Below are positions 1-56,991 of a stretch of 64,000 bases of DNA, one piece after another. Source of the DNA: Orbicella franksi. Taxonomy: Eukaryota. The position numbers and the translations under genes were made by a program. The stretch is taken from NCBI GenBank assembly GCA_964199315.1, contig OZ116702.1:8990001-9054000 (forward strand), in the 5' to 3' direction. The notes under the pieces were generated by a model that did no database searches, was not told where the DNA came from, and saw only the letters and a list, made by a program, of their open reading frames with translations. Numbering within the stretch: the first letter of the stretch is position 1; each line of letters starts with the position of its first letter.

Positions 1-230
1 TATTCTCGATCCAACTTGTTGCCTTTCAGTGGTATATTTCTTTTGTACATGAAAGTAACAAAGATTGATCAAATGGCAAGCAAAGTACATATCAATTATT
101 TTAAAAAAAAACTTAAGAATGGGAAATTCCGAAGTTGAGTTTTTATAGCCTTATGAATATCATTGCGGGTCTCTTAAATAAGTCTAAAATGATCTTTACC
201 GGCAAATTAACCAAACAAAGCCTTTCTTAC

Positions 231-14400: not shown

Positions 14401-16482
14401 GAATTCAAGAACTCTATCCAAATAGAAAAATTGTCACTAACATTTCGCTGTTATAGCAGTATTTAGGGAAGCAAATTCAAACTCTAGGTTCAGTATTTAG
14501 GCAGGTTTTCTCCTGGTTAATTCGACTTGTTAAAGGGAAATCTCATAAGCTGGGCTATTATCACGAAGAAAAACCAAAAAATGAATTTGCGCTAAAGAAA
14601 CTCGCTTAAGATTGTACTGGAGATGCATGTACCTGTCATGTGAAATACAGACTTGAATCCAAGACCAAAACGGCCGACTTTCATTGGATCTTCCACTTTG
14701 ATGCTATCACAGACCAGTCGAATACCCCTCCAGTCTTCTCTTGTAAACCGTGCGTTGTTGTAAGCGTAAAGCGCTGGACCCTGTTTGAACATTTCAATAA
14801 AAGATATATGAGGAAGGCTTCTGTGGAACTTGGAAGAGATTTGTATCTTTTTGTAGCGTCCCCAAACGCAACTTGTTGAGTCATGTCAACTATAACAGTA
14901 TGCCGTACATATTGGCAGATTTTCCTCTTACCTTATCGTCAAACAACATCAGAGAAAACTTTAGGCTTTTTAAGCCTGAAACATGTCTATGTATCTATAG
15001 TTTCTCCAAAATAAAATTGGATGGATGCACATTTTTCTGGTTTAAGATCTGTTTGTCAAACATAAACGGAAACCATATTCTTCCGTTCAGGAAAGTGCCA
15101 GGGACACGCTCCTGTGCATGACATTGAAAAGCCAAAACCTCAAAGGCTTTGACCATTAAATTAGAAGAAACCCTAAGTATTATGCCCTAGCTTTGTCAAA
15201 AATTACTGTGAAACTGAACTGAGCTGTTATTGTGAGTTATCCATTCATAAGGTTTTTGGATTTTAGCACAATAATCACTCTGTCTTAAACAATTCAGTGA
15301 GTTTTTTCTACGTGGCCCTAGCTGCGCGTTTTAAATTTTGTAAATTTTCAACGTCACTAAGTCATAATTTTTGGTCATTTCGATCAAAAATGAGACAAAA
15401 CCACGTGTTTACCTGAAATTGTGCGAGGTCCCCATCAAAAAGATATTCTGTGTCATGGCTGTGTTTGTCGTGCAAGAACTTCACTCGACTAGCATTTGCA
15501 TCCTCAGCATTTTGAATCAGTTCCTAGACATGAGAGGCGTGAGAGATAAACAATCGTAAAAAATGCGTATACTACCACAGGAAAATTCGCAACATCTAAC
15601 GCAAAAGTGTATAAATTTCTCATATACAGACTGTTAGAAAAGCAAACGAAGACTTCTCTTTCAGAGTCTCGCTGGTTTTTATCATGAATGCGAAGTTGAC
15701 GTGGTAATTCAGTTCTTAATTAATTGATCCATGGTAGTCCAGCTTGCTATGTGTTGTATTGTTTGGCAGAAGGATGATATCGTGATATTTTCAAACCTTA
15801 CTGTAGCAGATAGAAGGAAGGAAATTTTGTTTCCCTGCAATCTAGATAAAAGTATTTTGTTTTACCTTCAGTATCTGTCCATCATCAGGATACTGATCTA
15901 GGATGGACCTCAACTGTTGGATGAGTGATGGCTGAATCAAATCAAACCCATCGTCATCATTGTTCGCTGAGCAACAAATTAAAGAAACAGACATTAGAGG
16001 TAGTTTTCAAAGAAACCAAACACAAAGACCTGACGTTAGATATATCGGAACTACTATAATTCCCTTCGGAAGGATCGAGGCTTAAAGCTGCTTGCGGACA
16101 AGAGTATCCGTTTAGTTCACATTCCTGTTTACCAAATAATTCTGGTACATTGGGACTTATATATGTATAACATGCACTATAGACTAAGGAAAAGCGTCTT
16201 TGATGAATGTCTCCTCGTATCTTTAGGCAATGGTTCCTTCAAACTTTTATTCCAGTATTTATTCAAGGTCTTTTGAGAACTATTCCACGAGCGCGCCTTG
16301 AATAAAAGATTACAGATACCCAACAAGGTGTGTAACGCCAAGTTGGCTCTAATCATCCTCTAACTAACAAGCGCGGGTTGCTAAAAAACGTCTCCAAAAT
16401 ATAGAAAATTAAAAACGAAAGACCTCCAGGTTTCTTACTGAAGTCAGTGTTCAGTTATATAGTATAATTTATACCTACCCAT
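231..16482 (-). CDS. SACS: Sacsin-like protein, copy 1 (SRR1-SRR2-SRR3, J-domain, start of HEPN); 3' end off-window
   Basis: Phase-consistent GT-AG exons: 16482-16479 (ATG G), 15966-15866, 15523-15413, 14780-14633, 13825-12832, 12315-11738, 11440-231; total 13,146 nt = 4,382 codons, starting [16 protein letters not shown]. Three GHKL/HSP90-like SRR cores ([20 protein letters not shown]; [20 protein letters not shown]; [20 protein letters not shown]), J-like helix RWHPEKN, HEPN start [22 protein letters not shown], then donor GTAAGA at 230. Confidence 0.93.
11738..15966 (-). CDS. SACS: Five small/medium exons encoding SRR1 of sacsin copy 1
   Basis: 15966-15866 (..[13 protein letters not shown]), 15523-15413 ([13 protein letters not shown]), 14780-14633 ([13 protein letters not shown]), 13825-12832 ([27 protein letters not shown]..), 12315-11738 ([12 protein letters not shown]..). 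The first two are not in the ORF track and were read manually. Confidence 0.9.
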
Positions 16483-16677
16483 GAGTGAGAGTTCAGATTT
16501 TCTTCAAATAGCTACTTGCTCTTTTTCACCTGGTAACCATCTAAACAAGACCACAAGAAAAGGTTGATTAGCAATGAATAGGAAATGCAAGAACGGCATT
16601 TGCAAAATTAGCGCGCTTTGGAGCCATATTAAATATCCAAGCACTGCATATTTAAAAGCTGCGTAAATAGGGTGTTA

Positions 16678-20371: not shown

Positions 20372-21355
20372 AGCCTGGTTCTCATATCCCACCGACGTAC
20401 CTGCGACGTAGTCGCCGGTTGCAAGTGACAACGTTCGGTGATCTGTCCCAGTGGGTCCCCGGCGCATCTGCGATGGATCGCCGACTTACTCACATTTGCT
20501 CGAAATGCAAATCGAATTGCGCAATTTTCAACCATTTTACCTGTAAATAGATCGTTTACACTGTCACGCAATAAAAAAATAAATTGAAAACCATCCAGTG
20601 GAAAAAGCTATGACCTTACGATGATATATAAGATAACTAAATAAGACCCTTCTCCAAGTTTTAGACCTGTGCGTTTCCCCAAACTTCAGATATTCGTCGA
20701 AATGTTTCGCAGATATTTGCAGAGCCCAGTACGAAAACGCCATGTTGGTGTACCTCCGTGGTACACCAATATGGCGGCCGGAAAATAGTGTAAACATCTG
20801 GAACTTACTTTGGCTATCTAGGCGACTGATTATCAGTACTTATCAAACAAGCATTTACATAAGCACTTTTCATAATGCTCTAACTTCTAAAAAGGCTCAA
20901 AATCATGAGATAAGTATATATTTTTCGACAAACTCAATCGTAGCCTTGTGTCACGCACCTCCATAACCCTGAAATTCAAAATGCTCTGGATTCCAAACGA
21001 AGCACGCTATTAAGCTGTAAAATTGTAAACAGATATAAATATACCCCCTCTTATGCATGATGAGGATAAAAACTTTGGTGGCTGTTTAGTTTTGGATTTT
21101 CGAAAGTGATGACGTCACGTGAAAACGATCGAAATGGATAGAGTCGTCTCACTGGAGTACGTTGCGTCAGCAGATGATGTTCAGATAAAATATTTTGATC
21201 GCCGACAACCGCCGACAACCGCCGGCTTGCCTGCGAATTTGAACTCAGCTCAACTTCGCAGGCAAGCCGGCGGTTAATGCCTGGGATAGATTATGATTTG
21301 GCGATAAACGTTTACCTATGTCCCAGGTATGTCGGCGGCATATGAGAACCAGGCT
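20372..21355. mobile_element. PIF/Harbinger-type MITE (about 400 bp after removing the nested copy B)
   Basis: TIR AGCCTGGTTCTCATAT / ATATGAGAACCAGGCT flanked by TAA on both sides (20369-20371 and 21356-21358), the Harbinger-type TSD. Confidence 0.8.
20547..21130 (-). mobile_element. MITE copy B (inverted relative to copy A), nested in a Harbinger-type MITE
   Basis: Reverse complement of 19341-19927 with only a handful of substitutions; ORF-track peptides 19508..19732 and 20742..20966 are identical. Confidence 0.9.
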
Positions 21356-28408: not shown

Positions 28409-28690
28409 TTAGGGTATCCTGTCTTTGACTCGCATCACGATACTCTCTGAAAGCTGTAAGGCCTGCTGAGCCATCTGAGCGGTGTAAACTTCGTTAGGGA
28501 TCTTGGGTGCTTCGAACACCTGGTCTGGATATCGCATGCGCGCCGAGCAACCAACAAGTCTCTCCAGATCTCTTGCTAAGTTGGTTAACATGGAGTCATT
28601 CAAATCAATACAATTCCTAACCAAGTTGTGGTCCCTAGTATTGTTAGCATCTATTGTGTACTGAGTCGCCTTTAGTGCCTTCTCTGCTGC
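28409..28690 (-). CDS. SACS: Terminal HEPN exon of sacsin copy 2
   Basis: Acceptor ttttgttttcatatag at 28691, phase 0: AAEKALKATQY..HNLV..LERLVGCSARMRYPDQ..IPNEVYT..KDRIP, TAA at 28411-28409. Matches the sacsin C-terminal HEPN pattern. Confidence 0.9.
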   Translation of the reverse strand, partial: AAEKALKATQYTIDANNTRDHNLVRNCIDLNDSMLTNLARDLERLVGCSARMRYPDQVFEAPKIPNEVYTAQMAQQALQLSESIVMRVKDRIP

Positions 28691-31600
28691 CTATATGAAA
28701 ACAAAATTATGCAAAGTATTGCAACAGGCCAGGCAGACTGGTTACCAATAATGACAACTTAGAACGGTGACAGTTCAAACAAGGAAAGAGCGGAACAACA
28801 AAGAAGGACTTCACAGAGATTCCAAGTGTTCTAAAGTATATTATGAATATTATTTTGTAAACTCAGTTGTATAACGAAATATTTAATCGTTAACAGTGCG
28901 AGATCTCAAAAGTTTTTTTATTTTTTAACAAGCTAACCAATATCGCTGCCAGGCAATTAATGATCTTTACGGTGGCATAAAACTATTTTTACCTGATGGC
29001 ACTTAAAGCAAGCCCACTCATAGGAAGGTCTGCTGCAATCAATGTCGTTTGCAACGGCCGTAAGGTCTGCTTCAGCCTGTTTGAGCCAACGTCTGGCCTC
29101 TCCCGGCTGAGGGTTTCTCTTGCTGAAGCTTGGAGGAATATTATGCCATAGCCTGCGACCTGATGAAGATTCCCAAGGCCCGTACTCTTGGAGGAACCTT
29201 TCTATGTATTTATCATGCTGCAAACGATGCTCTCTTGCACGCGTTACCCAGGCCTCAATGTATTCGTCGTATGAACCGCCCAGTCGAAAGATTTCGTTCT
29301 TGATGTACTCAAATGCCTTTTCACAGAATTCTTCCAATTCATCTCCAAAATTTTTCTCTGGGTGCCAACGTAGAACTAGCCGCTTCACGATTTGTCGTGT
29401 GTGTTCTTCTCGTATTGTCCATGCATCCTCCAGTATCTTTGAGATCTCACCAAAAGCCTCTTCTCTATTACTGTATCTGGGGAGTTTAGTTGCCTGATGA
29501 GATATCTCTTGTATGCGGTGTAATTTGTACAAAAAGGCAGAATTGACCTCTACTGGTTCTTTGTCGTTTCCAATGTTGATTAAGTACATCTTCGTCAGGT
29601 AAATGAAATCTTGATCGATCACGTCAAGCTCCTCAATAATCTCAGCGTAGATGTACGTCGCAACGCCTTCCTCAAGTTGTAGGCTCGGGTCGTGTAGCTG
29701 ATAACCTACAAGTTCCCCTGGTGTAAATTCTGCAAAGGCGTCATTTAGTAGATGGTGCTCGTCGATTGGAATAAAGGTACCCGGCTCTAAATAGATATCC
29801 ATTTCTGCTATCTTGTAGCTGTCATCTTGTCGGATACCTGTTTTATCTAACAATGACCATATATTACTGAGCGGACAACGCAACATCTCAGGAATTAGCC
29901 ATGCATTCTTTCCAAGAAGGTCACCATAAATGTCTGCAATGACGTTGGCGATCAAGAATTTAGCCAAATCATCATCGTCAATTCCATGGCCTACATTGAT
30001 ATACACCCTGTACTTCTCTTGGCTGTCCACCTCACGTTTCTCTTTGAAGGAAGACACTTCTCGTTTGCTTCCTGGAATAAAGTGATCATTGTAAAAAAGG
30101 GCGGTTTGAAGACTTTCCACAGCACAGAGATCGATGTTTTGAAGATCTTTTTCGATATTTGCTATCACATTTTCGTCAAAATCTTTCCTGTGAGAGTTGA
30201 CGTCTCGCATGATTCTGACAATTCCATGACCAAACTGAGGACGCGTTAGCCGATGCATCAATGCGTTCACAGTTCCGCTTGTCACCTTTATACCATCAGT
30301 GAGTTTTTCTTTGACTACCGAGGATAGCATGACTGGTTGCACAGAAGCAGGCAATCTCATCATTAGCTCCTTGTAGTTGGTCATAACAGACTTAAATTGA
30401 ACGTCCATCATGCTGAGATCAAGTACAAAACGAAGGTCAAGGCTCAGAAAGCGATGGCCAAAGGCAGGCGTATCATCGAATACCAAGTCTGTAGACTTGT
30501 GCAAAGTGACAGGGACTTTGTTAAGAGACTTATCCAAGCAGCGACGTCCTGAACTCATTGCAGGTAGGTACAAAATAGGTGGCATAGCCAAATCCTGAAT
30601 ATCCTCCTGCAGGCTTTCAAACAATCCTTTAACTGCCTTGGAGCACATGCTAACCTCATCTGGTTGTAGTTTGGTATTCTGGCAATTGTCATGCAGCATC
30701 TCCAAAACCATAGCATAGTGTGTAGGTTTCACAGACTTAGAACAGCCAAGGTACTCAAACAATCGCTGAAACTTGCCAAATTCTGGAGGTAGTCTGTAGA
30801 GAAGCGGCTTGATCTCATAATCTTCATAAAGCTCGAGGACCGCTTGACTGGGCATAATGAGCTTCCTTCCTTGCTCAACCAAAATACAGGGTATAGCTTT
30901 AAGGATGTTCTTTGCTTCACTGCTTACCATTGCATTATCTTGAAGAAATCTGTAAATACGTTCCATTACCATCACCACCGTATGACAATGTGCGGGTGAA
31001 TCGATTTCCAACGGGCGAGTGCTCTCAAGGTGTAAGCAGACAGCTTTGCAGTGACGGGCAACAAGATCTACCGTTGGTTTCGTCACCACCTGTAGCTGTG
31101 CAAGGAACGTTTTGCAGTACTGGTCAATACTGCAAGGAGGAGGACAGTTAAGCTCGTATCGACGAGACCTTGGATCCGCCCACTTTGGAAGTAAGTACGC
31201 TTTAGTCCAAGCTATGTCCTCATAATCAGATAAAACTGCTCCTTTGAATGAAATGAAAGGAAGCTCCTCCTCCTCCTCCTCCTCCTCCTCCTCCAGCATT
31301 ATCACCACCTCATCCTCCATCACCACCACCACCTCCTCCTTCGGTCCTGAAAATGGTGGACACAGTGCTTGCAGTGGTTGCCTAACACAGTGCGGGGCCA
31401 CAAAGGCAATATCCCGAACAGCTTGTAACCAACCCTCTCTCACCACGTCATGTCTACAAATGAGGTGTCGGATTAGAACTTCACACTTGTCATATGTGTT
31501 ATTGGTACGTGCTGTGGCTGCTTCAATGGCCAGTTCAGTAGCAAATCTCTTAAAATGATCGAGAGAAACTTCATGAACCAGACCAATTTTTCGCAAAAAC

Positions 31601-34600
31601 ATTATCCAATCTGACGAATCAAATGGTTCCGAGGGGAAATCGTTGTCGGAGAGCATGCTTCCGAAAACATCGATACCAGGGTCGTAAAAGCAAGACGCGG
31701 TTTGTAGAGTGCCCTCTTCTGTGGGAAGGAGAGGAGTATTTCTTAAGCAGTCCAATACCCTTTGTTGTTCGCCATCCTCTTTGACGAAATCTGACAAAAT
31801 GGATTTACGGATGTATTCCAGGTGACTCTTTCTTGCGTCCTCACTTAGAATGGAGAAATTTTTCAGAATGAAGGTACAATACACGTCCACAGTGGAGACA
31901 CATTCGAGCGCCAGAAAATCGAACAACCCGGAGAGACTCTGCCAGGATTCCACAAATACAACTCTAAGCTCACGCTCCAACACGTCTATTTCCTTTCGTG
32001 GTATGCCAGTGGGAAGGACACACACTCTAGCGTCATCGAGACTTACAAAGCCTCCATGTGTTGCCAAGTAAAAAGGAAGCTTCCTGAGAGTGCTCCGATC
32101 TGTATCTTGCAAGCATCCCGCACTTCTACTGAAGTACTCTAAGATTATTCTACAATCTGACTGCTCCAATCTTTGAGTAACTGAGTTAAAGTCTGAAGAC
32201 ATCTTATGGTCAAGAGATATAAGAAGTGAAGCGGGATCTTTTAGGGACGATACCACCATTCCGGCTAAAGTAACTGAGTTTGACCGCGAGTACACAGATG
32301 TACCTGAGCTCGAGGCCGAAAGTACAGCACAATTAAGTTCAGGCAGACCAAGTTTACGCAAGACATCCACGAGTTTCAGACTTGCGGAATCTGGATTCTT
32401 AAAATCAAGGACAGACGCTGCATGTTTCAAGGGCGCAAGAAGATGCTCAGAATTTGGGACTGATCTCCAGGAGGAAAGCCAGTGGGTATTTTTTTCTTGC
32501 CTGCTCCTTGTCACGGTAACAGGGAGAATACTCCAGTTAAAGAGAGGTCCAAGAGCAGCTTTTATCTGAAGGACTTTACAACCCTCATCTAGGTTTGCAT
32601 CGCTGAGAACATCTCTTACAAGGTCGTAAAGGAAATTCCACAATCTGAATATCCATTGTTGATTGGGTATTGCTTTCTGATCTGGAGCCCACTTAACAAA
32701 CACGGCCTGTCCGTACATTTTGCGTGATAATGTTCGAGGCAAGTTGGCGGCGAAAACTTGCGCATCCAAGGGCTTCAAGACGGACGAGGTCAAGGTTGTA
32801 ACACCAGAGAAAATATTCCTGTCGACTACCTCATGAAGAAAAATGTGGGGAGAACAAGGCAAAAGATCGTGATATCGAGAAAAGATCTTAGGCTGTCTGC
32901 TTGAGAACAGTTGAAGACGTTTGTCTTGTGTAAGAAGCAATGGGAGATCCGGTAGCTTGTCGAGAAAATTTTCCGCCTCTTTGCAGTACAGCAGCACAAC
33001 TGTTACTCCAAAAGCACTTTCGAATACTGTGTTATTGACTTCACAGGGAACCGGTCCGATCGTACATAAGGGGTCTTGAGATTTGAACGTTCTGTAAAAA
33101 TCGACCATAGAACTAGGAGAAACGCAGAAAGTGGCAACATTAGATCGCTGAAATGATTCGTGTACTGCCAGGGAAAAGGCCACAAGGTTGAAACCACTTT
33201 CAAGAAGTATCACCTCAAACCGCTTTCTAAGTGTCTTTCCCTTGTCATATGTTTCCTCGAGAGATGACGTGCTAAAGGGTCCCTTTTCTGCAAGGTTGTT
33301 GAAGAATGCTTGGTGTCTTCCAGTGCCAGTTGGCGGAAGCCACGTCACACTAACCACGGTAGCACCTTTCTGGGTCTTCTTAGTTACATCCACTGTTCTG
33401 ATTCTAACTACTGGTAGAATTTGTAATTTTTTCCTATTCAATTCTTGAAAAACAGAATCGACCAGAGTCTTCCAATACTCCTCTGTGGTAGGTTGTAGTG
33501 GGAAAATAGTTTCATACGCATTAATCTTCTGGCAAATCTCACTTTCGGTATAAGCGGTTTCACCTGTAGTCACGGGAAGTTTAAGAAACGTCCGCACTTC
33601 ATCCAGCAGCCTAACGTAGCACGATGCTACGACATCCTGGAGTAAAGCATTGTTCCAGTCACTCCGATATCCGCCATGGCCACCTTCATCTCTCCATAAA
33701 TTTCTCCTTGCCTCATGGTCCAGCGCAAAGTGTCCGTTAATGTGAACTGGCAGGTTGGTTTCGAATGGTAGTGGCAGAAAGCAGTAAACTTTCTTTCTTC
33801 TTTGCGCAAGATCTCTTGAATTTCTCTTTTCCAAAAGGCAGGCCACACCACCACGTGGAAGCATCCTAAGCTGATGTGCCTTAAAGGCATCAACGATACT
33901 CTTTTTTACAGACTTCTCAAAGCCGATTTGTTGGACAATTAGCCATTTTTCCCGGTTACCAAGATTGTCAGCAATGTTCAAGACATAGGAAACTTTTTTC
34001 ACCGACACCTGACTAGTAAGAACCTCCCTCCTTTCATTTGCCATTTGACCAATCTTCTTGACGTAAGCAGAAAATTCTTGTCTCTTAGAGTCATCCTCCT
34101 TGGACATGGTTGCTTCAGCTGTGTAAACGTTCACCAACTTCTCGCCTGTTCCATCGACTTCACAGAGTTTTATCTTCTTTACATTGTTTACAAAGAGAAG
34201 GACTTCAAATAACTCCTCCTTCAGCTCTTCCATCATTTCATCTAGTTTTCCCAGAGACACAGAACCTGATGATATCTTGGATTCCCGAGCCATTTCCTCT
34301 GTTCTTAAGGGGAACCTAAACACGGTTGCGTTGTCTCTCGGAAAATGTTTTCCTAAATAGCAAGGGAAAACATCTGGGAAATCTCTCTGCAGGGTTGGGC
34401 TTACTATAAACTTCCTGCCAGGCTCTTGCGGACTTGCACCAGGAGCGTACTTGCAATTTGGGTCGAATACACACAAAACATCCCCAATGTCGTCTCCTTT
34501 CGAAACGAACGACGGTGCATCTGTCAAGTGGTAGACGGCATTGAAACCAACGCCATACTGGCCAGTCTTCTTCGGATCATCTCCCTTACTTCCTTCTCCA

Positions 34601-37600
34601 AGGTTCTGTATTCCGTCGATATCTACCTTTGTGAATGGTTTGTTGTTGTACACACACAACGCAGGACCCTGTAGCTGCTTCCAGCTGTCTTCAAACACTC
34701 TTTCTCGGGGATGTTGCCTTGGATCTTTGACGAAGCAAATCTCAGTTGCTTGGGCATCATCTGCGTTTTGAAGAAGTTCTTTCAAAATTTCTTTCTCGCA
34801 TGGGTAACCTGTTAGAATACGATTAAGGCGATTCGTCAGTTTCTCCGTCTGTCCATAAGGAATCCCAACGGCATGTCGATTCAATTCTTCTTCTCGCCGC
34901 GTTTTGACACCCACTTGGGAGCACGTTGCCCAAGGTATTTTGCCATTGACATACTGCACGCTAGCATCATCAGGCATCCAAGGACAGTTTTTAAAACAAA
35001 GATCAGGCAACGGTCGCATCACTCCTTCAGAGTCGGGAAGGTAAACAGTTCCCCACCTTTCTTGTACCTCAGATGGATGAACTTCAGACACTTGAAGTGT
35101 TTCTCCAAGTTGAACTGCCAGCTGAATTGCGACTTGAAGATTATGTTCATCTAGGTCAGTCTCGCCAAACTGTTTCTTCACTTCTTGAAGGCTTGAGATG
35201 TAGTCTTTCTCGTCAAACATTTGCTTAACACCTGCTACTTTCATTAACTTAGGAAATCCGTTAGCCAGATGCTGTGGCAGCTTGAAAAGAAAGGGCGAGC
35301 AGTCAGCTGGAAGCTTGAATGCCACGTGCTGTGCGGAAAGAAACCTCCTCCCGACAAGAATGAAACTCTTTCCCCTGAGATAGGTTTTGCATTTAGCAAC
35401 ACACTTTTCAGTAGCTTGCTCCATGTATTTATACGCTGCGAGGCAAACTCTACTTAATTCCTCGTATTCTGCAGCATTTAGTGCCTCGACGTTCACGGAC
35501 GTTGCTTGTTGAAGTTGATGCATAACGTGGTCTAATGTGGCATGCTTCTTGTCCAGGTCCAAAAGCTCTTTGACTTTTCTCGGAATAAAAACCCCGACCA
35601 ATGGTTGAGTACAGCAAACTCGGTACTTTTCCACCTCCAAGAACACTTCTTCGGGTGCGAGCAGTACCTGCAGCTGGGTACGTCTTTGAACACCATATCC
35701 TCCCCAGGGAAGAGGAAAGCTGTCTTGCTTGTTTAAAACGGGAAGAAATTTGGCCTTTACAAGACGCTGGCGATCGGTAGGTGAGATTGAGTGTCTTCGT
35801 TTTAGCTTCGTGTTCATGAAAGCTAACAACGCCTTCACTCGCTTTAACGCTGCATTACGGTCGACTGCATTTAACGTCTGAATGCTTTCAGCTCTTTCTG
35901 CAATTTCGGACCATGGAAGATTGTCGGATGCCATTCCCAGCTGTTCAAGTTTCGCAAGTCTTTGGGAATTAAGATACGATTCTTGATTACCAGAAGGAAA
36001 CCTCCCATCGCAGGCACTGAATAATGATGCTGCTTCTCTGACAGGATTTACGAGTTGGCTAGGGCACTTGAGTGTTTCACCAGATGGCGATACTGGAATG
36101 CAAGCATTCTGTTCTATCAAAAGATGGAAATCTCCACTGTTATCATCCAACGCGTGCAAGGTTAGAGCATCTCTCAAGAAAGCAGGGAGTACGCGTATGT
36201 TCTCGAAGAAGCATTCACGGAAAAATCGTTCCTTGCTGTAGCTTCTTGCACTGATTTCATTCTTCAGACTACACTTTTCGAACGAATTGAATACTTCTGA
36301 CGGTAAATCGACGATCACGTTGCTTTCACCATAAATCATTTGAAAAATTTTAAAAGAGGCCTCTCCAATTTGAGATTTTTCGCGGAACTCCGGATCGAGG
36401 AAAAGAACCTTGTTGATTTCGACCCAGTGAGCTCCATCAGAGAAAAGCGAAAGATCCCCTTTGGCAACTTGTTGATAGAAAGACTTCATCAGAGGGGAAC
36501 AGCTGTGGTGTACATTTGAAATCGTTGGCCACAGCAAATGGAATTTATATGAGCTTCCAACGGGAGCAAGTGACGTCAGATCTTCAAGAAGAATCAGAAA
36601 GGCAGAACAAACGGAATCTTGCATGAGCACTTCGTTCCATTTCACTCTATAACACGATTTGTCATCTTCAAGTTTCTCCTGCAAATGGCGTCTGTTGGAA
36701 GCAACTGCAAATGCGCCATTTATGTGCACAGGCAAACCACTGTGGATTGGAAGTGGTAGGTAGCAGAAAACAGTGCCATTGACATCCAGTCCATCGACAT
36801 TCTTGATAACTGGCGATGGCAAAAAATTGTTTGAGGTTTGTGCTAACAACTGAACCGCTACTCCTGCTGATGGAACCAGACTTGGGTCATCATGCTTCTG
36901 AACAAACTGCATTGCCTGGCCACTGCCCATTGACGACACAATAAGCCATTTTACCTGCTCCTGTTCAAAACACGAGTCAACATTGAAATAATCCAGACCG
37001 CTTTTTGTGAAATTGCAATTAATGTCCACCGTCAGCGTCGATTTTGCAAACTGCCTTGGGTCGACATCGTCATCTCTTGCGCGTCTCGTAATTTTCGATG
37101 CTACTTGAAGGAAGTTGCATTGTTTAAGGAAGTTCTGTTCTTCCCCACTGAGCTTCTTTGCTGTGGCTGGTAGCGTGACATCGTAAGAAAATGGCCTCTG
37201 TATCCCTGTTTTCGAAGCTGATTTGGTAACCTCAAACAACAATGAAGGCCGTAGATTTTGAGGTGAAAACTGTGACAAATGGTAGATGCCAACGCGGAGT
37301 ATATTCTGTGTAAAAATAAGCAAATTTTTTGCTCCTTGAAGAAACATTTGCAACAGTTTCTGCATTTCGTTGTCGTCGTAAAACAACTGCTTAATCTCAC
37401 TTCGTATCGCTTGCTCTCTTGTTCTCAGTGGAAACCGAAAAAGTGTTCCATCAAATGAGTTGACTTCCCCGTTCAGATGAAACTCGCAGCCAAATATGCC
37501 ATTGAATGGTTTGAACTGATCCCTATACTCCCGAAGTCCGTCGGCATCTTTCTTGAGATCAATCTTAATGCCTGGCCGAGCGAAGTTCTTTTCGATGAAT

Positions 37601-40481
37601 TCCCCGAGGTGCGACATGTGAGGGTCAAAAACCACAAAATAGTTCCTGCTTAAAAACATAGGTACATCTGTCAAATTGTAGACTGCATTGAAACCAAGTC
37701 CGAACTTTCCAATCTTTTCAGTGTCGTGCTCTTTTGTCGCGCCGCTCAATTTTTCTATGTTCACAAAATCCTCATCTCTGAATGCAGCGTTGTTGTAAAC
37801 CCACAGTGCACGGCCCTGGCAGTCTCTCATTCCTTCGTCAAATAGATAGTTCATGGCATCTTCGTTCGTTCTTTCATCATATAGAAATCTGATTTCAGTG
37901 GCACCAGCATCATCTGCATTTTGAACAAGCTCTTTCAGAACTGAAAATCCATCTGTGTAGTCATCCAGAAGCCGCTTAAGTCGAGTCGTGAGAGGCTCAT
38001 GCTGCCCAAACTCTTCTCCTATAGAACGCCTAGACAGCCTTCTTCTAGTGAAGGCCGTTGAGGTTGCGGCTTTAGTCGATTTTTTCATCATCGCCTTCTT
38101 TCTTCAAGCCAAGTTCACAATACGATCACCTGGTTACAACAAAAACGTACTTGTAATTGCCCTTTGAATATATAGTCATATTTTTCTATATCAAAATACC
38201 TGTATGATTATTATATTATTTTTATGATAGAGGGCCTCTCTCGATAGTTGAGAACTGACCAAAATTTCAACTGTCAGCTGATTTTTTAACTGATAACTGA
38301 GATCTGTAAGGTCTACTGGTGGCTGAGAAATAAGCTGACATAGCTGATAGCTCAGAAATTATCGAAAGTATATCTCCGTAACTGAAGTTTCAGCATTGCC
38401 ATCAAGAACATAAAATGCCCTGAACATGAAACACCCCAAAACTTGCCCAAACCCAAGAGAACGTTTGTTTAAAGCGGGGTCTACTTGTTTTAATTCTAGA
38501 GGGGAGATGCATTTTTCATAGCATCTCACTTGGTTAGTTTTTATTGGTCTTCTTAATACTGCTTTCAACAATATTACATCCCGTTAATAAACCTGATGTA
38601 CAAGTCTTCCTCTTCAAGAGGGATGTTAAAATTGCAAGCGGTGGAAAATAGCTCAGAATCTAATTTCCCTACAAGATTTTCATACACCATATCCCAACAA
38701 CTTAGCCTGAGTATCCGGCTTTTCCAAAGTACTGGGAAGGGGGAGGAATAAAAAGGAAAAGAAAAAGGAAGAAAAGCGTGACGCAAGGACATTTTAAATC
38801 TGAGGGCTTCCGACCCATCACAGCATGACACGCGTCTTCGCAGAAAGTAAACGATCAAAATCATATCAGGTCTTGGGCATAATTCGAAGATGTTCTGTGA
38901 AACTACAAAAATAAAATCTTTGCGAAGTACTTGGCCGCGGGTTTGACCTTTGGCGCACATCGCTTTTCTTCCTTCTCCTCCCCCCTCACCTCTCCCGTTA
39001 CGAAGGCCTGATACTCAGGCTACCGAAAACTGAAAAATACGTGCATGGCTCATGATCACGCCAAGAGTTTCTTTCTGTCAAGGGATACTATATTTCAGTT
39101 ATTTACGCTGTAAAAGGACTGATACGTACTCGTGTTCAGCAATACGTCAAATCGTGTTAAACTCTACCCCAGAATTGAACCGACCTAAAATACAAAAATT
39201 ACAATTATAATCTTTTGAAAATTACAACGATAATTTATTAAAATAACAACGATAATTCATTAAAATTACAACTATAATTTATCAAAATATTAAAATCATA
39301 ACGATAACAATGGCGCACTATTTTTGATAAGTGCTTGGTGTGTTAGGCTTTGTTACGACAACGAAGTTTAAATAATATATAAAAATTCATTTGAATTAGC
39401 ATATCAGACAACGCTGTGTATTTTGTAGCATTTTCAAACATCAAGAGAAAAGTCGAAAATGCGATTCGAATAGATCATTTTTAATGTCAGACATTCAGCT
39501 GTGTTTGGCTATATCTCCTCAATCCAAAATTACTCTAAAAAGCATATGGAGAAATAAAAATTCTACTCGTCTGGGTGGCATTCATATAAATGGGTTGTCA
39601 ACAAGTATAAGAGGGTTTTTGGATGGAAAACCCGAAACCATAGATAATCTCTTTTGGCTCTTCTTGCCTACAGGGTTCTCTCAAATGACCGACCGAGTTC
39701 AGCATGAACATTTGAAAAGCCTTTCAAAAATTAATTGCACATTCCATTACGTTACACAATTTTTGCGCATCCGAAGTGATGTTCAAATTATCATTATTTT
39801 GCATAGTTGTCCTTATTGTTGTCATTCAGGATTAGTGAACTGTGTTACAGCAAAACTACTAAAACCTTAAACGGAAACAGTGTAACTTAAGAACATTTAA
39901 GGCTCGATATTGGCAAACATTTAAAACGTTCAGCTTCAGTCCGAAAATTTGACGTTCTTACAACATCCCATGCGTTAGACAGAATGTAGATCCGGCATTT
40001 TGGAAAGGCGTCTGCATAACCTAAGCATAGGCAGAAAACTCCCGAAAATGCCATTTCAGAAAGGCTTCCGTATATCAACGGTTAGGTATAGCTACTGGCT
40101 CTCGTTAAACTACTGTTTCCAAGGTTATAAACTAATGCTGTAATCTCCCTGCATCCCTTCACTCTCAGTCTTTACTTATCTTGCATGTTTTTCAAGTTAT
40201 CTTTTGAGGTAGTTAATTTCTTCACAAATGAGTGTCCATGTGATAGTCTCGGCAATTTTGCCTGTAATCACTTATTTTTCCAGACATTTTCAAAAGCACA
40301 AACTATTTGACCAGCATTCATTACCATACATGAGGTAAAACGTTAAAGGAAAATCTATTACAGTGAAAACAAAGGCAGTATCTTAGGAACTGAGTTCGAA
40401 TTTAAAGGTAGGTGTACATGGAATGTTACGGAAGAACGATTCCAAAGTTAGTATACAGCTCGCATATATATACCTACCCAT
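28409..40481 (-). CDS. SACS: Sacsin-like protein, copy 2 (two SRRs only, J-domain, HEPN), about 3,100 aa
   Basis: Preferred model: 40481-40478 (ATG G, homologous to the copy 1 start exon), 38018-28993, 28690-28409 = 9,312 nt, 3,103 aa starting MGEEFGQHEPLTTRL. Alternative start at ATG 38091 (MMKKST.., 3,126 aa). Colinear with copy 1 from SRR2 to HEPN. Confidence 0.9.
28993..38018 (-). CDS. SACS: Giant 9-kb exon of sacsin copy 2 (SRR2, SRR3, J-domain, HEPN start)
   Basis: Within ORF 28957..38091. Donor GTAAAA at 28992 follows CHQ, the same position as in copy 1. The 5' boundary is uncertain (acceptor before 38018 or 38129). Confidence 0.9.
31264..31341 (-). repeat. Coding microsatellite (GAG)10 plus GTG/GAG run in sacsin copy 2
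   Basis: Encodes EEVVVVMEDEVVIMLEEEEEEEEEE; absent at the aligned site of copy 1. Confidence 0.9.
38703..39022. mobile_element. MITE with TAGCCTGAGTATC termini
   Basis: TAGCCTGAGTATC at 38703-38715 and its reverse complement GATACTCAGGCTA at 39010-39022. Confidence 0.75.
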
Positions 40482-43147
40482 GAGCATGCCAGATTCGCCA
40501 AAAATAGCTCCCTGTTCCTCCTTCACCTGGTTATAATCTAAATGAGGCAACAATTAATCGAAAGGGATTACCATTGATTACAAAAGAAATGTAGAAAAGT
40601 TGTATCAGGAAAAATCAGCACACTTTGGAACCCGGAGTGAATATCCAAACTTTGTCAAGCTACGCAAATATTCCGCGACAAATTCAAGATGTTTCTAGGA
40701 CACTTGCTGTAGACAATACTAATTTAAATTTCTACGGATCGTGTACACGCATCATAGGTAACTCAAGCATACTACGTACATATATTCAGTTGCATATTAA
40801 TGACATTTTGAAAATGCAAGACTTCTGGTAATTTAGAACTGGCACTTTCTGCGGATAAATAAACGTTGTGTTTCTAGGTATTCTGGGCGATTTTTGGTTA
40901 ATATATCCTATAATGTTGTATATTTCCAAAAGACAGAAGAATTATTCGTTTTAGAACAACAATATGGTTACCGTGAAGGCTCATCTCAGAAATTTTAATT
41001 CACCACTGTTTTGAACAAGCCATTGTCGTGAGTTCGTTAATGAATCAACCGAGTTTTCTCATATCAGCTAGTCATCGCATGAAGTATTTTCATTCATTGC
41101 ATAGCACCGTGCTTGCATTTGTACACATATGGTGTTAAAATACTGAAGCGAATCCTGACACTGAACAAATATGTCTTCCACAACGGTCTTGGCAAGGCCG
41201 ACCGAGAATTAAAGAACTTTCCCAAACAAGAGTGTGTACAAAAGCATACAAAGCACTGTGTAATCACAATAAAATTTCGTTTTACCTTGAAAGTCGAGAA
41301 TGTAGCCGCGAACTTTTAGGTGCTTTCCTCCTAGTACGGGGAAAACGTTCAATTAAGCTTCCCGTTCACTCCGGAAGTTCTTCTTATCTTGTTCCGCGTT
41401 CAAATCCTACTAACTACAGATATAAAAACTTAGAGTTCTGACTCCTTGTAACACCTACACGTAGTTATAAATAAACAGACTTTTTCAAAGTATCATTGAA
41501 GATTCTAGGAAATTCTGTTGTAGTTTCCTGTTATGTCCTTCCGACAAAACAAGTTCATTTGCATGACAATTGTATGTTGAGGTAGCTTGAGTAAATTAAT
41601 TGAAGTTTCTATGGCCAAGCAAGCGTAATGTTTTGACGTTGCGATAATAAAGATATCTAATGCCTCAATGCTCTGACAGGATTAGAATTTGTAAGAATTA
41701 TTTATTCATTTTAATGTTAAGCAATCTCTCACCGTCAAAATCCACCTGGCTTGCTTTTCGAAAAGTATAACAAGATTCTTGCAGTTCGATAAAAGACGTC
41801 TACAAATCTCTTTTATGCTGCCGCCAACATCCACAACGATTTTTAAAGAATTATATACCTCAAAATAGTCGCACTCATAGCAAATGACCCGAATAAAAAA
41901 ACCCTTGTATATGTTGCATTACTCAGCGCTCTGCTACAAGGTATCTGAGGTACTACCGTTAACAATTACCTACAGAAATTTCACTGCACTTGTTAACAAT
42001 CTTTCCCTTACGGTGTCACTAAATAAAATATTTCAGCGGAATAACATGCTTCTTGATGCTTTCAACATAATAAGAATGAACTTTCAAAAGCTGATCAGAC
42101 TTGTTTCAAAACTGAAATCTTTTTTGTTTTATCTGAGGTGCTTCCTAACGCCTTCAACTAATATTTATACAGTATAATGAAGAACAAGACATAAGCTTTT
42201 CTTGTAAATCAACAAAAAAAGATGGAGTTTGTGGTCATTTGCAGTAGCATTTAGATGGCAAATCGCAGAAAGTATAAAAACATTTCAGCAACTTTTCTTT
42301 TTTATCATTCAGCTGATTGCCGTGACTCGATCTGCGGCATTGGAGTCGATCGACCAGTTGAAAGTTTGACGCAAACATGTATCAGTGGCAGCTTTAAGTT
42401 GTTTTTGTTTTGCCAAGAATTATTTTTGTTGCAACTATTCCCAAATACATCAACAGTTCAAACCTGACAATTTCTAAACATTAAAATGGGCCATTTGTAT
42501 ATAAACTGGAATTCATTCATGGTACTTCGGTACTTCTTCAAAGAGAAATGATGCTTGTTATACTTAAAACACGACAGCTCCGTATAATGATTTTCATTTG
42601 GCCGGAGAGTTTCAATATGTTTTCAAAACAAGAGAAGTACACGGCTTCTGGTAAATAATGGTATTTCTTTCTAAATATTCTAGGGAGGCCTGTCTGAGAC
42701 CTGCCTCGGCAAAACAACGATATTTCTGAATTTCTCTTTCGTACGATAGCTCTTTGTGGCTCCTTCTTCGACGAGAAAATAAAACTTCTGAGAATTCGAA
42801 TACAAACTAAGCGAAGCCGGGTCGGCGCAATGCTTTAGGTGCGTTTCAAAAAACGATTTCGCGCCGAAGCAAAGTATGTTTTGTCTCAGTGTATACGTTA
42901 TGCGTGTTATTAGGGTTGGTACGACGTAAACAAAGCTTGTGGGTAAACAAAGCCTAAAGCTAAGGGTCAGTTTATGAAGCATTCTTTTCTTTTCTGTTTT
43001 GCAAGTCATTCGACAGCAGGCCTCTCTTTTTCATCTTAATATAATTGTACGGCTGGAACAGTCGCAGTGTCGAAGGCACAGCGTACATGGTATGACATGT
43101 TTGATCGCAAGTGAGCGAGATGATTGAACACAAGGATATGTATGTAA

Positions 43148-43553
43148 GGCCCAGTTCAGACGTCGTGCTTCTGCCGTGCCGAACTAAATTGCAATTTGGT
43201 TCGACTGTAGCACGGCAGGAAATCAACTCTGATTCAGACGTCGTGCCAGAGTCGAATCAAATCCAAGGTTTACTGACGCCTCATAACAATTCTCCTCCTA
43301 ACTCCCCGAGAGAACGAAATCTCGCCAAAACACATTGACATAATTTATGAATTTAGTTTGGCGCGACAGAAGCACGACGTTTGAATCGCTGCCGTGCCAG
43401 AGTCGTGTAGCACGGCAGAGCTTGTCGAACTTAATTGCTTGCCGAACTTAATTCAAAAGTTTGATTCAGACACCGTGCTTCTGCCGTGCTTTTGTCGAAC
43501 TTAATTCCTGAATTTAGTTCGGCACGGCAGAAGCACGACGTCTGAATTGGGCC
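43148..43553. mobile_element. PIF/Harbinger-type MITE, 406 bp
   Basis: 43-bp TIR GGCCCAGTTCAGACGTCGTGCTTCTGCCGTGCCGAACTAAATT with one mismatch; TAA TSD at 43145-43147 and 43554-43556; internal subrepeats of the TIR. Confidence 0.9.
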
Positions 43554-44260
43554 TAAGGTCTTAAAAATGGACGGTGTCAGTTTGCGCTTTAGGTCTTCTC
43601 CTTTAAAGCGAACTTGACAGCGTCACATGATTACAGAAAACAATTCGATACAATTCAGTAAGGCCTAAAAAATTTACCAATCGACAAGGGCAAAACAGAT
43701 AGCGTGACTGTACTTTAGCTTTGAACTGGTAGCTGGTAGTGCATAGTTACTGAACGTTTCAAGGGGATGGATCGCATGCCTTTATGATTCTAAATGATTC
43801 AGAGTCAGTTGTTTTTATAGGCCGCCCGACAAATCAGTCACCAGTTTCATTCGATCATTTTATCTTAAAACGAGTTCTATTATTATTTGGACAGGATAGT
43901 TTCGTTGGAACCCTGATAAAGCGTCTAAAATTAATATTATTCCGAATGGGATTTAAATATCACTGATGGATGACGCTCACAAATGTTGCATATGTGTTGT
44001 GATGTTATTCGTAGCTTTGTTATCGAATTTAATTTGTTCTCCCTCTCAGAACAAATCGTACCGACATACGAGCGAATTGGGCCGCTACCTCTCAGTTTAA
44101 TATTCGAGAGATGTAAACAATGTGTCTCTCACAGAATGATTTCTTGATCTCCTAACCCGAGATTGATGTCAAATAAATCCACCTTTCATGACTAAAAGTT
44201 GAGTTTGACCATAAAGAAGTCCGTTGTGCTTACATTTTTGACGTAGGCCAGGTTATATAG

Positions 44261-44366
44261 CATGTCGAAAGATGGCATGTCGAAAGATGGCATGTCGAAA
44301 GATGGCATGTCGAAAGATGGCATGTCGAAAGATGGCATGTCGAAAGATGGCATGTCCGAAAGATGG
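44261..44366. repeat. 15-bp minisatellite (CATGTCGAAAGATGG)x7
   Basis: Six perfect units at 44261-44350 plus one with a 1-bp insertion. Confidence 0.95.
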
Positions 44367-44460
44367 TTGCTATGCACGTAACACTGAAAGCAGGTGTAAA
44401 AAGCGACTTTTTTCGCCCTCCTCGAGCAGTCATACAAACCGTTGATTTTCTGCTAAAGAC

Positions 44461-45013
44461 GTTTCTACGATATAACATACTGAAAGATTTTCTTACCTCT
44501 TTCTTAGTTTCAAACTGCTTTTGAATCGGCGTATTCGCTTTTCACAAACCAACGAACACAGCGCAAATGTCAACAAACAGATCCCTCTCCAAGAATCCTC
44601 AACGATTCTGGGAAATGCTCTTGTAATTTCCGAAACTATCTTTCCGAGAAAAGCCAGATTAATTATCACATGTTAATTGACATGACAGCGATACGTGACG
44701 TAAGTGATTTTTACCAGGTCCCCTATGTGAGTTGCGAGTCAGGTTCATGATTCACTCTTGTACCCAGAGTCACCAGTCCTTCTGACCCGGTAAGGCCTTG
44801 GCACGAGGAAAAGGAGACCACAAGAGACTGGCCGCTCTGGAAACGAGAATTTTATCGGTCATCATATTGATGCTATTGCTGCGTGAAGTGAAAAGTGAAA
44901 AAAACTTGTACCATGCAGGTACCGTGCTTTACGTATGTATGTATGCAGCACCGGAAATAAGCAAACCTTTGTCTCCAGGTTAAGAGAGGAGGCCCCGAGG
45001 GACAATTTTTACA
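44461..45013 (-). promoter_or_regulatory. Conserved upstream block D of sacsin copy 2
   Basis: Paralogue of 22899-23449. Candidate donor AG|GTAAGA at 44496; TTCTGGGAA, TTCCGAGAA and GAAAAGTGAAA motifs. Confidence 0.65.
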
Positions 45014-45654
45014 TCTGAGGTGGCGTGGTGGGTCGTTTTCAGAAGATGTCAAAAATTGGCTTCTCTTTGTTATGAATTACAAGAGATTGCTTCTCCGAAG
45101 AGATTAACAATGCCGCGTGATGAAACTCTCTTCAAAACATAATGACTCCAAACAAGTAAAATTCTGCGTTCATCGCTTGAAATATCGTCAGTCTTAGAGC
45201 TCACCGTGACGATATAAAATGGAAATAGTTTTAACTGTAGTTGCCTCTAGTTGTGAAAAAAACATAAACAGACAAACCAAGTCCACAAAACAAAAGGAAA
45301 AAAACAAACAAACAAACAAAGCGCACGATTCGTTAAGAACTAAATTCTGAGCCCATTTGCTTTTTTCAAGCATATCTGGGGCCTTGGGGAGGGGGTGGGG
45401 TTGAAAGTTGGTAGCTGCTTATGAAAGGCACGGTGCCAAGCCGTACGTCCGTGAGATGTGGGGTGGGGGGAAGCAGAAGGCTTGAAAGCCCCATCCCCAA
45501 CCCAAATCTCTGGTTTAGTTTGATGGTGTCTCTCAAACAAATTGAGTAAATAGTACTAGGTTCAAGTTTTCTGGTATAATACTTTATTTCGATCACAGAG
45601 GCTGCATTGGGATAAATATATACAACCGACATCCCTGAATACTCGTAATTTTAA

Positions 45655-48600
45655 TTAGCTGGGTGCAGAGTTTTGTCTGAACTGCCTCAGGCCTTGTAAG
45701 AATATCTTCTTGGTCTGATCCATCATCTCTTGGTAGAATTTCAAGTCCTCCTCTTTCGCTTTCAGCGTTGAACGGAGTGCTTCTTTCAAAGCGTCGTTTT
45801 CGTCTGTTTGGATAGCGAGCCTGCGATGAGAGAACACAACCATACTAAGCGAGCCGTTAACATTAGCGTAAATAAACGGGCAACATAAAACATCGAGCAC
45901 TAAATTCATCCATAGCTCGAGAGATGAAAGCATGAGTCAAAAATATCGTTTGTCGCAAAGCAATAATTCAGAACGTTTATCCGGCGCACTTTATGATGGA
46001 ACAAACGCTACTCTTACTAAGTTGTCGTCTTTAGTAAGCTTGCAGTAAAGGATCAAGGTGTTCTCGCGTCCAGACACTATCTTGCTCGTTATTGGACCGT
46101 TTATGAAGCTGTATCCATTCACGACACCACAGTAACTACTGTGGGAATCGATTGGTTGGAATTTTTTTTTTTCGACGGTGCGTAAATGCACAGAGCGCAT
46201 AAAAACATGTTGAGAGGACCTGTCACATTCATTAATTTGTTCTTATCACATTTTGGCGTTATTCATGCATAACATCAGACGACAAGCTGACAGTCAACAA
46301 GTATTTGTCCTACCTAGTCGAAAGTTCATCCACGTCCTCTGTCTTTGCCTGTCGTTCATGTACCGCACTACCTGTACTATATCCCTTCCCCCTTCCCTTG
46401 GCCACACCCTGTCCTGACTGCACTCGGCTCAGTTGCTTCTCCATGTGGGCCACTTGACGTCGCTCCTGTTGCCACTTGTTGGTCGTCTCCAGTTCGCTGT
46501 TTTTAGCTTCATCAACTCTGAAAATGCGTGTAGAGAAAGCGATGTTTCACTGCATGCGAACAGCTTACAAACCTGTCTAGGTTTCGGTAAACAGAGTGCA
46601 TGTAACCTAAACCACAGTACACTATTCTATTTGAAAGAAAAAGAAAAACCTTCGGTTTAGAAAATACTCTATGTGTTTCAATAGGCCAGTTTGCAAAATA
46701 CTAAAATTCTAACCTGGCTCTGAGGCTTAATAAAATGTTGGATTGGCCTATTCCCCCTTCTTTTCCAACAATGCCGCCCCCTACCTCTCCTCCCTCCTCG
46801 TCCCTCTGATTTACCCATGAATCTCACCTTCTCTGCAGGAGAGTCACCAGTTCTAACAGTCGATCCCTCTCAACTTCAGCGGCTTGACACAACGACTTGC
46901 TCTCCTGTACTTGAGATCTTAATACCTGGATTTCCTCGCTGAAACAATTCAACATTGAGGGAGGGGTGGGTGATTTTAGCAAAAAATTAACCTGCACGCA
47001 TACTTGCACTCCCCACCCCCCCAAAAAAAATCATGCACACGACCACTGCCAACAAAAATAACCTACATACATAAATCTTAAGAAAAATATTCCTAGTGCA
47101 TGAAACGTGAAACCGAATCATCCACACTCCCCCTGAAAAGTCCAGTGGTCCACCCCTTAGGATGTAAATTCTTAAACGGAACCATGAACTGTGTCACGGT
47201 GGCTTTACAAAACTTGACTAAGACAATACTCTTGCAGTAATGATTTTATTGAGCAATACTATGAAGCAATCGAAGCGAAGTTGTCGTTCATTTCTTTCTT
47301 CGACCAATCGAGATTCAGAAAAATGACAACAGACTTTGAGTTGCCTTGAATATAGTTTGTAGTCCACCAGTCATTAAAAAACAAATTAGGAGTACGATAT
47401 TCCCTGCAGTCGGTGGAATGCTTTCCCGAGCTTAAGTGCCGCTAGTGGAATGTTTTCCTGCGCTTCAGTGTCGCCGGTGAAATGTTTTCCCGCGCTTTGC
47501 ACCGTCATGTTGTTCTCTCGCCACTACTGACACTAAACGTCTCCAGGTGCTAGGCAAACAAAACGCGTTTGTTTCGTCGTGTTCTAATTATTGCACGTAT
47601 TTTGTGTCCGGAATGACTGGTACTGCTTCAGATGTAGGAAGCAAAACAAATGAAAACCCGCCCTAATGGAAAACAGAAAGAAGTATTACCGTTTACCTGT
47701 TCCCAGCACTATTCCTTCGTGCCCTGCTTCCTCGCCCTCCGCTGGGTGGTGTGGGAGGAAGCTGGTATCCCTGCGCAGAGCCTCTTCCCGACATGCCATT
47801 CACACTTGTTCTGGACACTAAATGCCGTCGATTTGGACTGCCGGGAACCGATGAAACCTGGGTTCGACTGGGTCCTTCTCGTTGGAGTTGTGAAGCAGTC
47901 GCGTGTCCCTTATGTGTCACGTGCATGTTATTTTGAGGCCCACCGTTCTCGACGCTATCTGCGAAAGGCCCTCTAAACAACGGGCCTTCTACAAAACCGT
48001 TCACAGAGCCATAGACAGGTGTTGTTCCTCTGTATAAGGGGCCTTGAGGGGCATCGTCGTAACGTGGGGCACTTCGGTCTAATCTTTCTTCCATAGTTTG
48101 TAAATCTTCCGTACTACACGCCACAGATTTGGTCTCCCGCTCTGATAATTCCCGGTACTTTTCTGTCGTGTTTTGCAGTGCTTGCCTTGCCTTACCCAGT
48201 TCTTGTTCTAGTTGCTGTATTCGTCCGTCCCGTTCCTGGCACGCCTGTTTCAGATGCTCTATTTGGGCCTTGTCCTGAGGCGTACCTAAAACATTCGGGG
48301 ACGGTGGAGTTTCTTTTTTACTTGCTGCACTCTTGAGCTGTTGCTGTTCCCTCTGCAAAGGAACACAAGAAGTAAATAAATCTTGTTTACATCCAATACA
48401 ACGTAGGTCGTGAATCAAGCTTCCTTTTGGCCTAGTGATAATCAGTACATCGTCATTTTGGAGTGTGGAGGAAAGCAAATATTTGTCCCGGCACATGAGA
48501 GTTAGGAGAAGCGTGACGTTACTAGCTAATAGCGAATGAGTTTAGCATTTGGCGATAACCGTGACTTTTAGCAGACATTAGTCTTTTTTGGGATGTCACG

Positions 48601-56789: not shown

Positions 56790-56991
56790 ATTTTTAAAAG
56801 ATTTTAGGTGGAAAATTCGTGTGTTTGTCCGACATATTTGTTGGCAACAGACAAAGTTGTCGTCCTCAGTCCTCTCTCTCTCCCTTGTCTTCCAAACGAG
56901 GTTCGCTCGCAGTGGTCATGTTGTCATCTCAGTCAGACCAGCCAAGTTCTTGTCTATTCGAGCAGTTTGTCTTTCCAAGCCTAGGGTAAAC
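56790..56991. promoter_or_regulatory. Putative bidirectional promoter and 5' UTRs shared by CCDC13 and NEK8
   Basis: Divergent start codons at 56789 (-) and 56992 (+) are 202 bp apart. Contains an RFX-like half site TGGCAAC and forkhead-like TGTTTGT/GTAAACA words (weak on their own). Confidence 0.7.

Follow-up and report, generated by a model that had tools for sequence, protein, structure and literature searches.

Two tandem sacsin-like genes in a window of a stony-coral chromosome

Sacsin is a protein of about 4,500 amino acids (aa) with three sacsin repeating regions (SRRs), and its size hinders work on how these modules cooperate. We analyzed a 64,000-nucleotide (nt) stretch of a stony-coral chromosome (Orbicella franksi, GenBank assembly GCA_964199315.1, contig OZ116702.1, positions 8,990,001 to 9,054,000), referred to as the window, with all coordinates counted from its first letter. 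Two tandem sacsin-like genes, both on the minus strand, are found in the window. Copy 1 possesses a giant open frame of 3,786 codons (207-11567) with further exons lying upstream. The part of copy 1 used for comparison (15866..16540) contains a start-codon exon at about 16540-16479 (ATGG/GT) and exon 2 (15966-15866), where SRR1 begins. Splicing ATGG/GT to the exon at 15966 gives a 14-residue reading that agrees with NCBI coral models, for example P0014, starting MAEKGGRSFGLIQP. Copy 2, the subject of this analysis, has an open frame of 3,044 codons (28957-38091). Two Pfam SACS (SRR) domains are detected in the giant exon of copy 2, compared with three in copy 1, two of them in its giant exon and one in the upstream exons.

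Comparison of one half of the window with the other by blastn aligned 217-9278 with 28979-38022 at 65% identity and 16467-16669 with 40466-40670 on the copy 2 side, again at 65% identity (215 nt, E 9e-13). At the protein level, copy 2 is 54% identical to the three-SRR copy 1 from SRR2 through HEPN. An earlier annotation made from the letters alone (the sequence-only reading) had proposed that copy 2 keeps a start exon homologous to that of copy 1. This proposal stands: in addition to the 65% identity and a shared acceptor, the window contains exactly two occurrences of the 14-mer CTCATGGGTAGGTA (16485-16472 and 40484-40471). The same reading had seen no SRR1 exons between this start exon and the giant exon of copy 2, and blastn and tblastn found none. 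A counterpart of copy 1 positions 9279-16466, sought with both programs near copy 2 (38130-48000), was not detectable, and tblastn with all open segments of the copy 1 5' part against 37900-48000 returned only the start of SRR2 and a 17-residue remnant (38122-38075). About 1,350 N-terminal residues representing one whole SRR module have been lost, as had been claimed, and copy 2 is a real two-SRR sacsin-like gene.

Copy 2 retains two SRRs, a J-like region and HEPN

The SACS family (PF25794) matches copy 2 in two stretches (E 6.8e-157) while the HATPase_c_3 match is weak. Both GHKL N-boxes are kept (ELVQNADDA at residue 53 and ELLQNADDA at residue 1104), as is GKFGLGF at residue 127. The J motif reads HPE instead of HPD at residue 2909 of copy 2 and at residue 3663 of the copy 1 giant open reading frame (ORF), and there is no Pfam DnaJ match at E<=0.01. 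HEPN (PF05168) is matched by residues 2999-3034 of the giant ORF (E 4.9e-4) and by the following exon E (E 3.3e-6). An N-terminal ubiquitin-like domain is confined to vertebrate sacsin, and Pfam gave no ubiquitin-family match in either giant ORF or in two upstream exons of copy 1. Coral sacsin-like genes have likewise been described without an N-terminal ubiquitin-like domain (PMC8626496).

Copy 2 shares with canonical sacsin (human SACS and coral three-SRR proteins such as the Acropora 'sacsin-like' protein, PMC8626496) one giant coding exon, SACS/SRR supradomains bearing an Hsp90-like GHKL N-box, a J-like region and, at the C-terminus, a HEPN domain that an intron divides. Canonical architecture includes three SRRs (PMC3710099). 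In contrast, copy 2 possesses two SACS domains, with no SRR1 remnant found upstream, lacks a ubiquitin-like domain and carries HPE in place of HPD. Its probable start codon lies within the giant exon, in the former SRR1-SRR2 linker, while the old start exon has become an exon of the 5' untranslated region (UTR) with an upstream open reading frame (uORF). By predicted domain content the two-SRR sacsin is an architectural variant of a known family that occurs in several corals. No description of two-SRR coral sacsins was found in the literature searched.

The mRNA of copy 2 begins with at least four short non-coding exons

Splice evidence consists of contigs from three RNA runs (X1, X2 and X3, from two studies) placed on 37300-41500. 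The RNA runs containing the sequence carry coral labels. Logan contigs omit rare variants and consequently show the main transcript form but not the absence of a minor one. Up to 91% of the words sampled from the giant exon are present in RNA runs, and spliced mRNA including this exon is assembled at 9-16x word depth in two of them, confirming that copy 2 is transcribed. The contigs show that in its mRNA a 9.1-kb exon starting at 38133 follows at least four others (0, A, B and C), all short and non-coding. The joint from 41286 to 40537 (minus strand, GT..AG) is present in all three runs, that from 40478 to 39184 in X2 and X3 together with a consistent 12-letter loose end in X1, and that from 39131 to 38133 in X1 and X2. 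Further upstream, X3 joins 41415 to 44499, and its loose end of 119 letters, located upstream of exon A, is an exact match to 44528-44499. All splice sites of copy 2 are GT-AG with the sole exception of the giant-exon acceptor in the window haplotype, which is considered below.

Exon 0 (44497..44651, minus strand as for all exons of copy 2) is the first observed 5'UTR exon. Its 3' end at 44497 is firm and directly followed by a GTAAGA donor (GTAAGAAA) whereas position 44651 marks the start of conservation with relatives and not a mapped 5' end. The region 44651-44469 is 64-68% identical to regions upstream of two related coral genes, L002 and L003. About 50-100 nt upstream of this conserved block, at 44690-44702, lies CTTACGTCACGT, which includes a motif resembling a cAMP response element (TTACGTCA) and whose position would fit a promoter at about 44.7 kb. 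Exon A (41286..41413) contributes 128 nt of 5'UTR without an ATG, has checked splice sites at its contig joints, and extends unspliced to at least 41500 in a contig of run X2. Exon B (40478..40537, 60 nt), defined by RNA joints on both sides, is homologous to the start-codon exon of copy 1 (16479-16540), with which it shares both acceptor and donor. Exon C (39130..39184, 55 nt), likewise delimited by RNA joints, is non-coding and contains a TGA that terminates the uORF; its last base (39130), seen as one additional G after CACG in the RNA contigs, is likewise G in the related loci L001 and L002, against A in the window.

The giant exon D (28993..38133, 9,141 nt) starts with 42-45 nt of 5'UTR and then encodes the two SACS domains, the J-like region (HPE) and the first part of HEPN. 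It ends at a CAG/GTAAAA donor (28993/28992). The last coding exon, E (28409..28690, acceptor TATAG/GCAGCAG), adds 93 aa comprising the second half of HEPN and the TAA stop codon at 28411-28409. RNA contigs are unbroken from 37300 to 38133, where they join exon C.

Two other contigs of run X3 were observed in this region. One joins exon C (39130) directly to 28690 at exact exon boundaries and represents an isoform that skips the entire 9.1-kb giant exon, its longest ORF being a 60-aa HEPN tail. In the other, 25 unrelated G-rich letters are joined to 38078, just past the A-run of the start region, at a place with no splice signal. This is probably a chimera or reflects divergence in the organism sampled.

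The long reading frame opens at a tandem ATG within the giant exon

Reading frames of the mRNA were computed on exons assembled from the observed joints. The 5'UTR of about 450 nt contains only two ATGs (40487 and 40481), both located in exon B and in frame with each other. They open a uORF of 15 or 13 codons (MLMGRFNSGVEFNTI, then a stop) that ends at the TGA in exon C; the mature mRNA thus has an AUG in its leader whose frame is closed before the main AUG is reached. The sequence-only reading had taken the ATG of exon B as the protein start (MGEEFGQ). With exon C included, this frame closes after 13-15 codons, and a direct join of 40478 to 38133 would also run into a stop (ATG GCC AGG TGA). 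As in uORFs derived from former start codons in general, a 5'UTR AUG is stopped before the main AUG and the peptide is short. The uORF of copy 2 is a predicted one, and relatives show no counterpart of it.

The first ATGs of the giant exon form a tandem pair (38086..38091), and the second of them (38088-38086) is conserved as the probable start codon throughout the two-SRR lineage described below. A TGA in the giant-exon frame at 38106-38104 lies 5 codons upstream of 38091. From ATG 38091 or 38088 (MMKKSTK...) the main ORF, including exon E, encodes 3,125-3,126 aa (3,125 from 38088) with the predicted N-terminal peptide (M)MKKSTKAATSTAFTR, and this is the only route to a long protein in the observed mRNA. 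Translation of copy 2 most likely begins within the giant exon, at the conserved ATG 38088 (or at 38091), and not at the splice proposed earlier.

Two-SRR sacsins form one coral clade under purifying selection

To identify relatives, we carried out homology searches with the first 450 N-terminal residues and then with the first 400 residues. The former yielded no match above 73% identity and revealed giant ORFs (3,005-3,070 aa) with an MKK or MKR start, followed by 20-30 residues and then SIGE(E/D)FGQ or SIEAFGQ. The latter added P0121 (88% identity, MMKKSTK), P0123 and a gene-model fragment of Desmophyllum pertusum (P0122, from OS493_002255). Together with P0018, P0021, P0025, P0032 and the P0052 group, these ORFs of other stony corals show the same truncation and MKK/MKR start as copy 2. 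The MKK/MKR sequence is the start of, or is carried in, ten related proteins, with P0121 starting MMKK and P0122 containing MKKST internally. Exact-sequence look-up of the 3,044-aa ORF of copy 2 and of P0121 found no record.

Four loci (L001-L004) and a fifth (L005, a second contig encoding the same protein as L004) were compared as DNA. The giant-exon acceptor occupies the same position as in copy 2, and ATGAA is invariant in 5/5 aligned genes (the window and L001-L004). Exon C with its acceptor TTTTAG and donor GTACGT/GTATGT is conserved in L001 (45 nt) and L002 (51 nt); since these lengths and the 55 nt of the window do not differ by multiples of three, the exon is non-coding. Conservation extends to exon A in L001 and L002 and to exon 0 in L002 and L003. 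These coral ORFs differ from copy 2 in their sequence (64-88% identity), in the lengths of their N-terminal extensions, which vary by in-frame indels, and in that exon B is undetectable at all five loci.

In a maximum-likelihood tree of the SRR2 region the eight MKK-start proteins included form one clade with a support of 100/100 among three-SRR coral paralogues, indicating that SRR1 was lost once and that the loss is old. Copy 2 displays the features of this clade, namely an MKK/MKR start in the former linker and an acceptor about 45 nt upstream, and groups within it. Judged from these comparisons, the truncation is not a recent local event but is common to a well-supported coral gene clade. 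Pairwise dS (synonymous divergence) within the clade is 0.4-1.6, and the ratio of non-synonymous to synonymous divergence (dN/dS) is 0.18-0.28 along the whole 9-kb exon. Comparison of copy 2 with L002 gives a dN/dS of 0.19-0.38 in every 300-codon window. The selection that the sequence-only reading had suggested for this exon is borne out, and the values support purifying selection on copy 2.

A remnant of the SRR1-SRR2 linker contains the probable new start codon

The region 38019..38127 (minus strand) is a remnant of the old SRR1-SRR2 linker as identified by tblastn and by alignments with copy 1 and three-SRR proteins. Its 5' part reads YCELGLKKEGDDEKID followed by a stop in the old frame, and the decayed linker remnant noticed upstream of 38018 in the sequence-only reading is real. 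Today this part belongs to the UTR and, in the neighboring frame, supplies the probable start codon, and the 3' part is predicted to be translated as an N-terminal extension (MMKKSTKAATSTAFTRRRLSRRSI). Intact homology had been thought to begin exactly at ATAG/GA, a position that does not mark such a boundary: the frame is open back to ATG 38091, and relatives keep the old linker upstream of SIGEEFGQ. The apparent onset of homology at ATAG/GA is seen in copy 2, the more diverged gene.

Where three-SRR proteins have 25 residues, the old-frame reading of the L001 linker, offset by one base from the main ORF, gives LKKEGNNEEID and a stop. The old-frame remnant LKKEG(D/N)(D/N)E.ID followed by a stop is conserved in copy 2, L001 and L002. 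Downstream, the main ORF corresponds to the old frame, as seen in RIPGPSFSSRTLQAPEELSIGEEFGQ of P0021 compared with RLGVPTLTNRMLDADELSIGEEFGQ in three-SRR proteins. A hand alignment of copy 1 and L001 indicates that about 41 nt, corresponding to the codons for 14 residues, were lost between the two linker parts, a change that would have shifted the frame such that an ATG hidden in GAC GAT GAA came into frame with SRR2. Homology of MKK with the old LKR, as set by a MAFFT protein alignment, was rejected as coincidental: the DNA alignment puts the ATG in frame +1 relative to the old D-D-E codons.

Loss of an ATPase module and probable replacement of the start codon

We consider it likely that copy 2 is functional, that it belongs to an old sacsin-like lineage of stony corals from which SRR1 was lost, and that it is translated from the conserved ATG of its giant exon. 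An ancestral deletion would have removed exons 2-6 and the first approximately 720 codons of the giant exon, and the further deletion of about 41 nt in the linker would then have placed the previously out-of-frame ATG in frame with SRR2. Ribosomes may reach this ATG by leaky scanning or by re-initiation past the uORF. The product (SRR2, SRR3, J-like region and HEPN) could act as a shorter sacsin-type co-chaperone with two ATPase modules or as a stress or defence protein. The fuller history, in which loss of a whole ATPase module was rescued in two steps, with promoter and start exon kept, the old AUG demoted to a uORF and the new start supplied by the 41-nt deletion, and in which the two-module sacsin has since been kept by purifying selection across stony-coral lineages, seems to us only slightly better than an even bet.

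Several observations weigh against these interpretations. The translation start is a prediction from sequence comparison. The MKK-start proteins begin with methionine through ORF calling, leaving the invariant ATG position and the in-frame indels as independent support. A homologue of exon B, sought in L001-L005 by Smith-Waterman alignment with shuffles and by pattern, did not rise above chance, and conservation of the uORF is therefore not shown. The splice joints come from assembled contigs, and a raw-read run with the same species label (X22, PolyA) aligned zero reads. Given the omission of rare variants from Logan contigs, a minor isoform joining 40478 to 38018 may exist. The figure of 41 nt is approximate, being taken from the hand alignment of copy 1 and L001. 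Finally, the acceptor used by the RNA (38135-38134) is AA and not AG in the window haplotype, where it reads TGTAA, while four relatives have TGTAG or TGCAG precisely where the RNA contigs start.

This acceptor is among the points in favor of the possibility that copy 2 is a decaying pseudogene or transcribed relic whose ORF is open by chance or was recently disabled, with the uORF and the missing AG at 38134 blocking protein production. The existence of the giant-exon-skipping isoform would likewise agree with such decay. We regard it as very improbable, since the 9.1-kb ORF is uninterrupted in copy 2 and in no fewer than five further loci, low dN/dS is maintained throughout, catalytic motifs are kept, and mRNA containing the giant exon is assembled at substantial word depth. 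Moreover, the next AG lies 4 nt downstream of 38134, still within the 5'UTR, and a shift to this site would leave the coding sequence untouched.

The model of the sequence-only reading, in which a phase-1 splice connects the exon B ATG with a latent acceptor ATAG/GA (38018..38019, minus strand) to give a protein starting MGEEFGQHEPL, is equally hard to sustain and in our view very unlikely. In its favor, the join is in frame and on recomputation gives the open 3,103-aa product originally reported, the donor after ATGG at 40478 is truly used in the RNA contigs, and an equally phase-1 AG occurs at the corresponding site in relatives. The acceptor is where the model lacks support: exon B joins exon C at 39184, no joint at 38018 is found in the three runs, whose contigs continue through this position to 38133, and the bases in question are read as codons ATA GGA (I G). 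The pyrimidine tract of the putative acceptor is also poor. Upstream of this site relatives retain the ATG and an open frame, and an exon B that could serve as the splice source is not detectable in them. Of the intron proposed for 38019-40477, the donor holds, while 38019-38133 is exon and the 55-nt exon C (39184-39130) within it had been missed. Least likely of all is loss of the copy 2 SRR1 through collapse or mis-joining of tandem paralogues, to which arrays of similar giant genes are prone, because the window contains no runs of Ns and hence none of the assembly gaps that had been a concern, the two copies at 65% DNA identity are too diverged to collapse, RNA contigs reproduce the junction between exon C and the giant exon, and independent assemblies of other corals show the same truncated architecture.

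A functional, SRR1-less copy 2 bears on the modular organization of sacsin. A conserved and expressed two-SRR version would mean that SRR1 is dispensable for at least one selected function and would offer a natural template for a shortened 'mini-sacsin'. If the two-step rescue is true, it implies that two SRRs suffice for a distinct, selected function, and the locus would represent a clean example of start-codon replacement following domain loss. Sacsin-like genes recur in coral heat-stress and bleaching studies (PMC8626496, 10.1101/867754), and correct gene models for the paralogues consequently matter for expression analyses and selection scans.

Additional features of the introns and flanking regions

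The introns around exon C contain several further elements. An intronic block at 38513-38668, which may represent a regulatory element, shows 63-69% identity with the corresponding intron of L001 and L002. It was rejected as a hidden exon, being classed as non-coding because of indels that are not multiples of three and the absence of splice signals. Two ORFs inside the intron sequence (38574-38960, minus strand, and 39484-39870, plus strand) were discarded as genes, neither having a Pfam match. An element of about 320 nt at 38703-39022, within the intron separating exon C from the giant exon, has 20-nt inverted arms (TAGCCTGAGTATCCGGCTTT and AAGGCCTGATACTCAGGCTA) and inner purine- and pyrimidine-rich arms and looks like a miniature inverted-repeat transposable element. 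Directly upstream of the exon C acceptor, 39195-39307 consists of 4-5 tandem copies of a 22-nt AT-rich unit. Derivation of exon C from a decayed copy 1 exon 2 or from other 5' exons or introns was rejected on the basis of alignment scores below the shuffled-control mean.

Between both sacsin genes, 19344-19927 and 20547-21130 form a 584-nt inverted repeat with 99% identity that may have arisen by recent inverted duplication or may be a transposon carrying long terminal inverted repeats. On the plus strand, the open frame at 56620-57984 encodes 454 aa and includes a complete protein kinase domain (Pfam E 9e-73). Downstream of the kinase frame, an ORF at 59986-60558 (plus strand) has weak RCC1-repeat matches, and the two may together constitute a NEK-type kinase gene.

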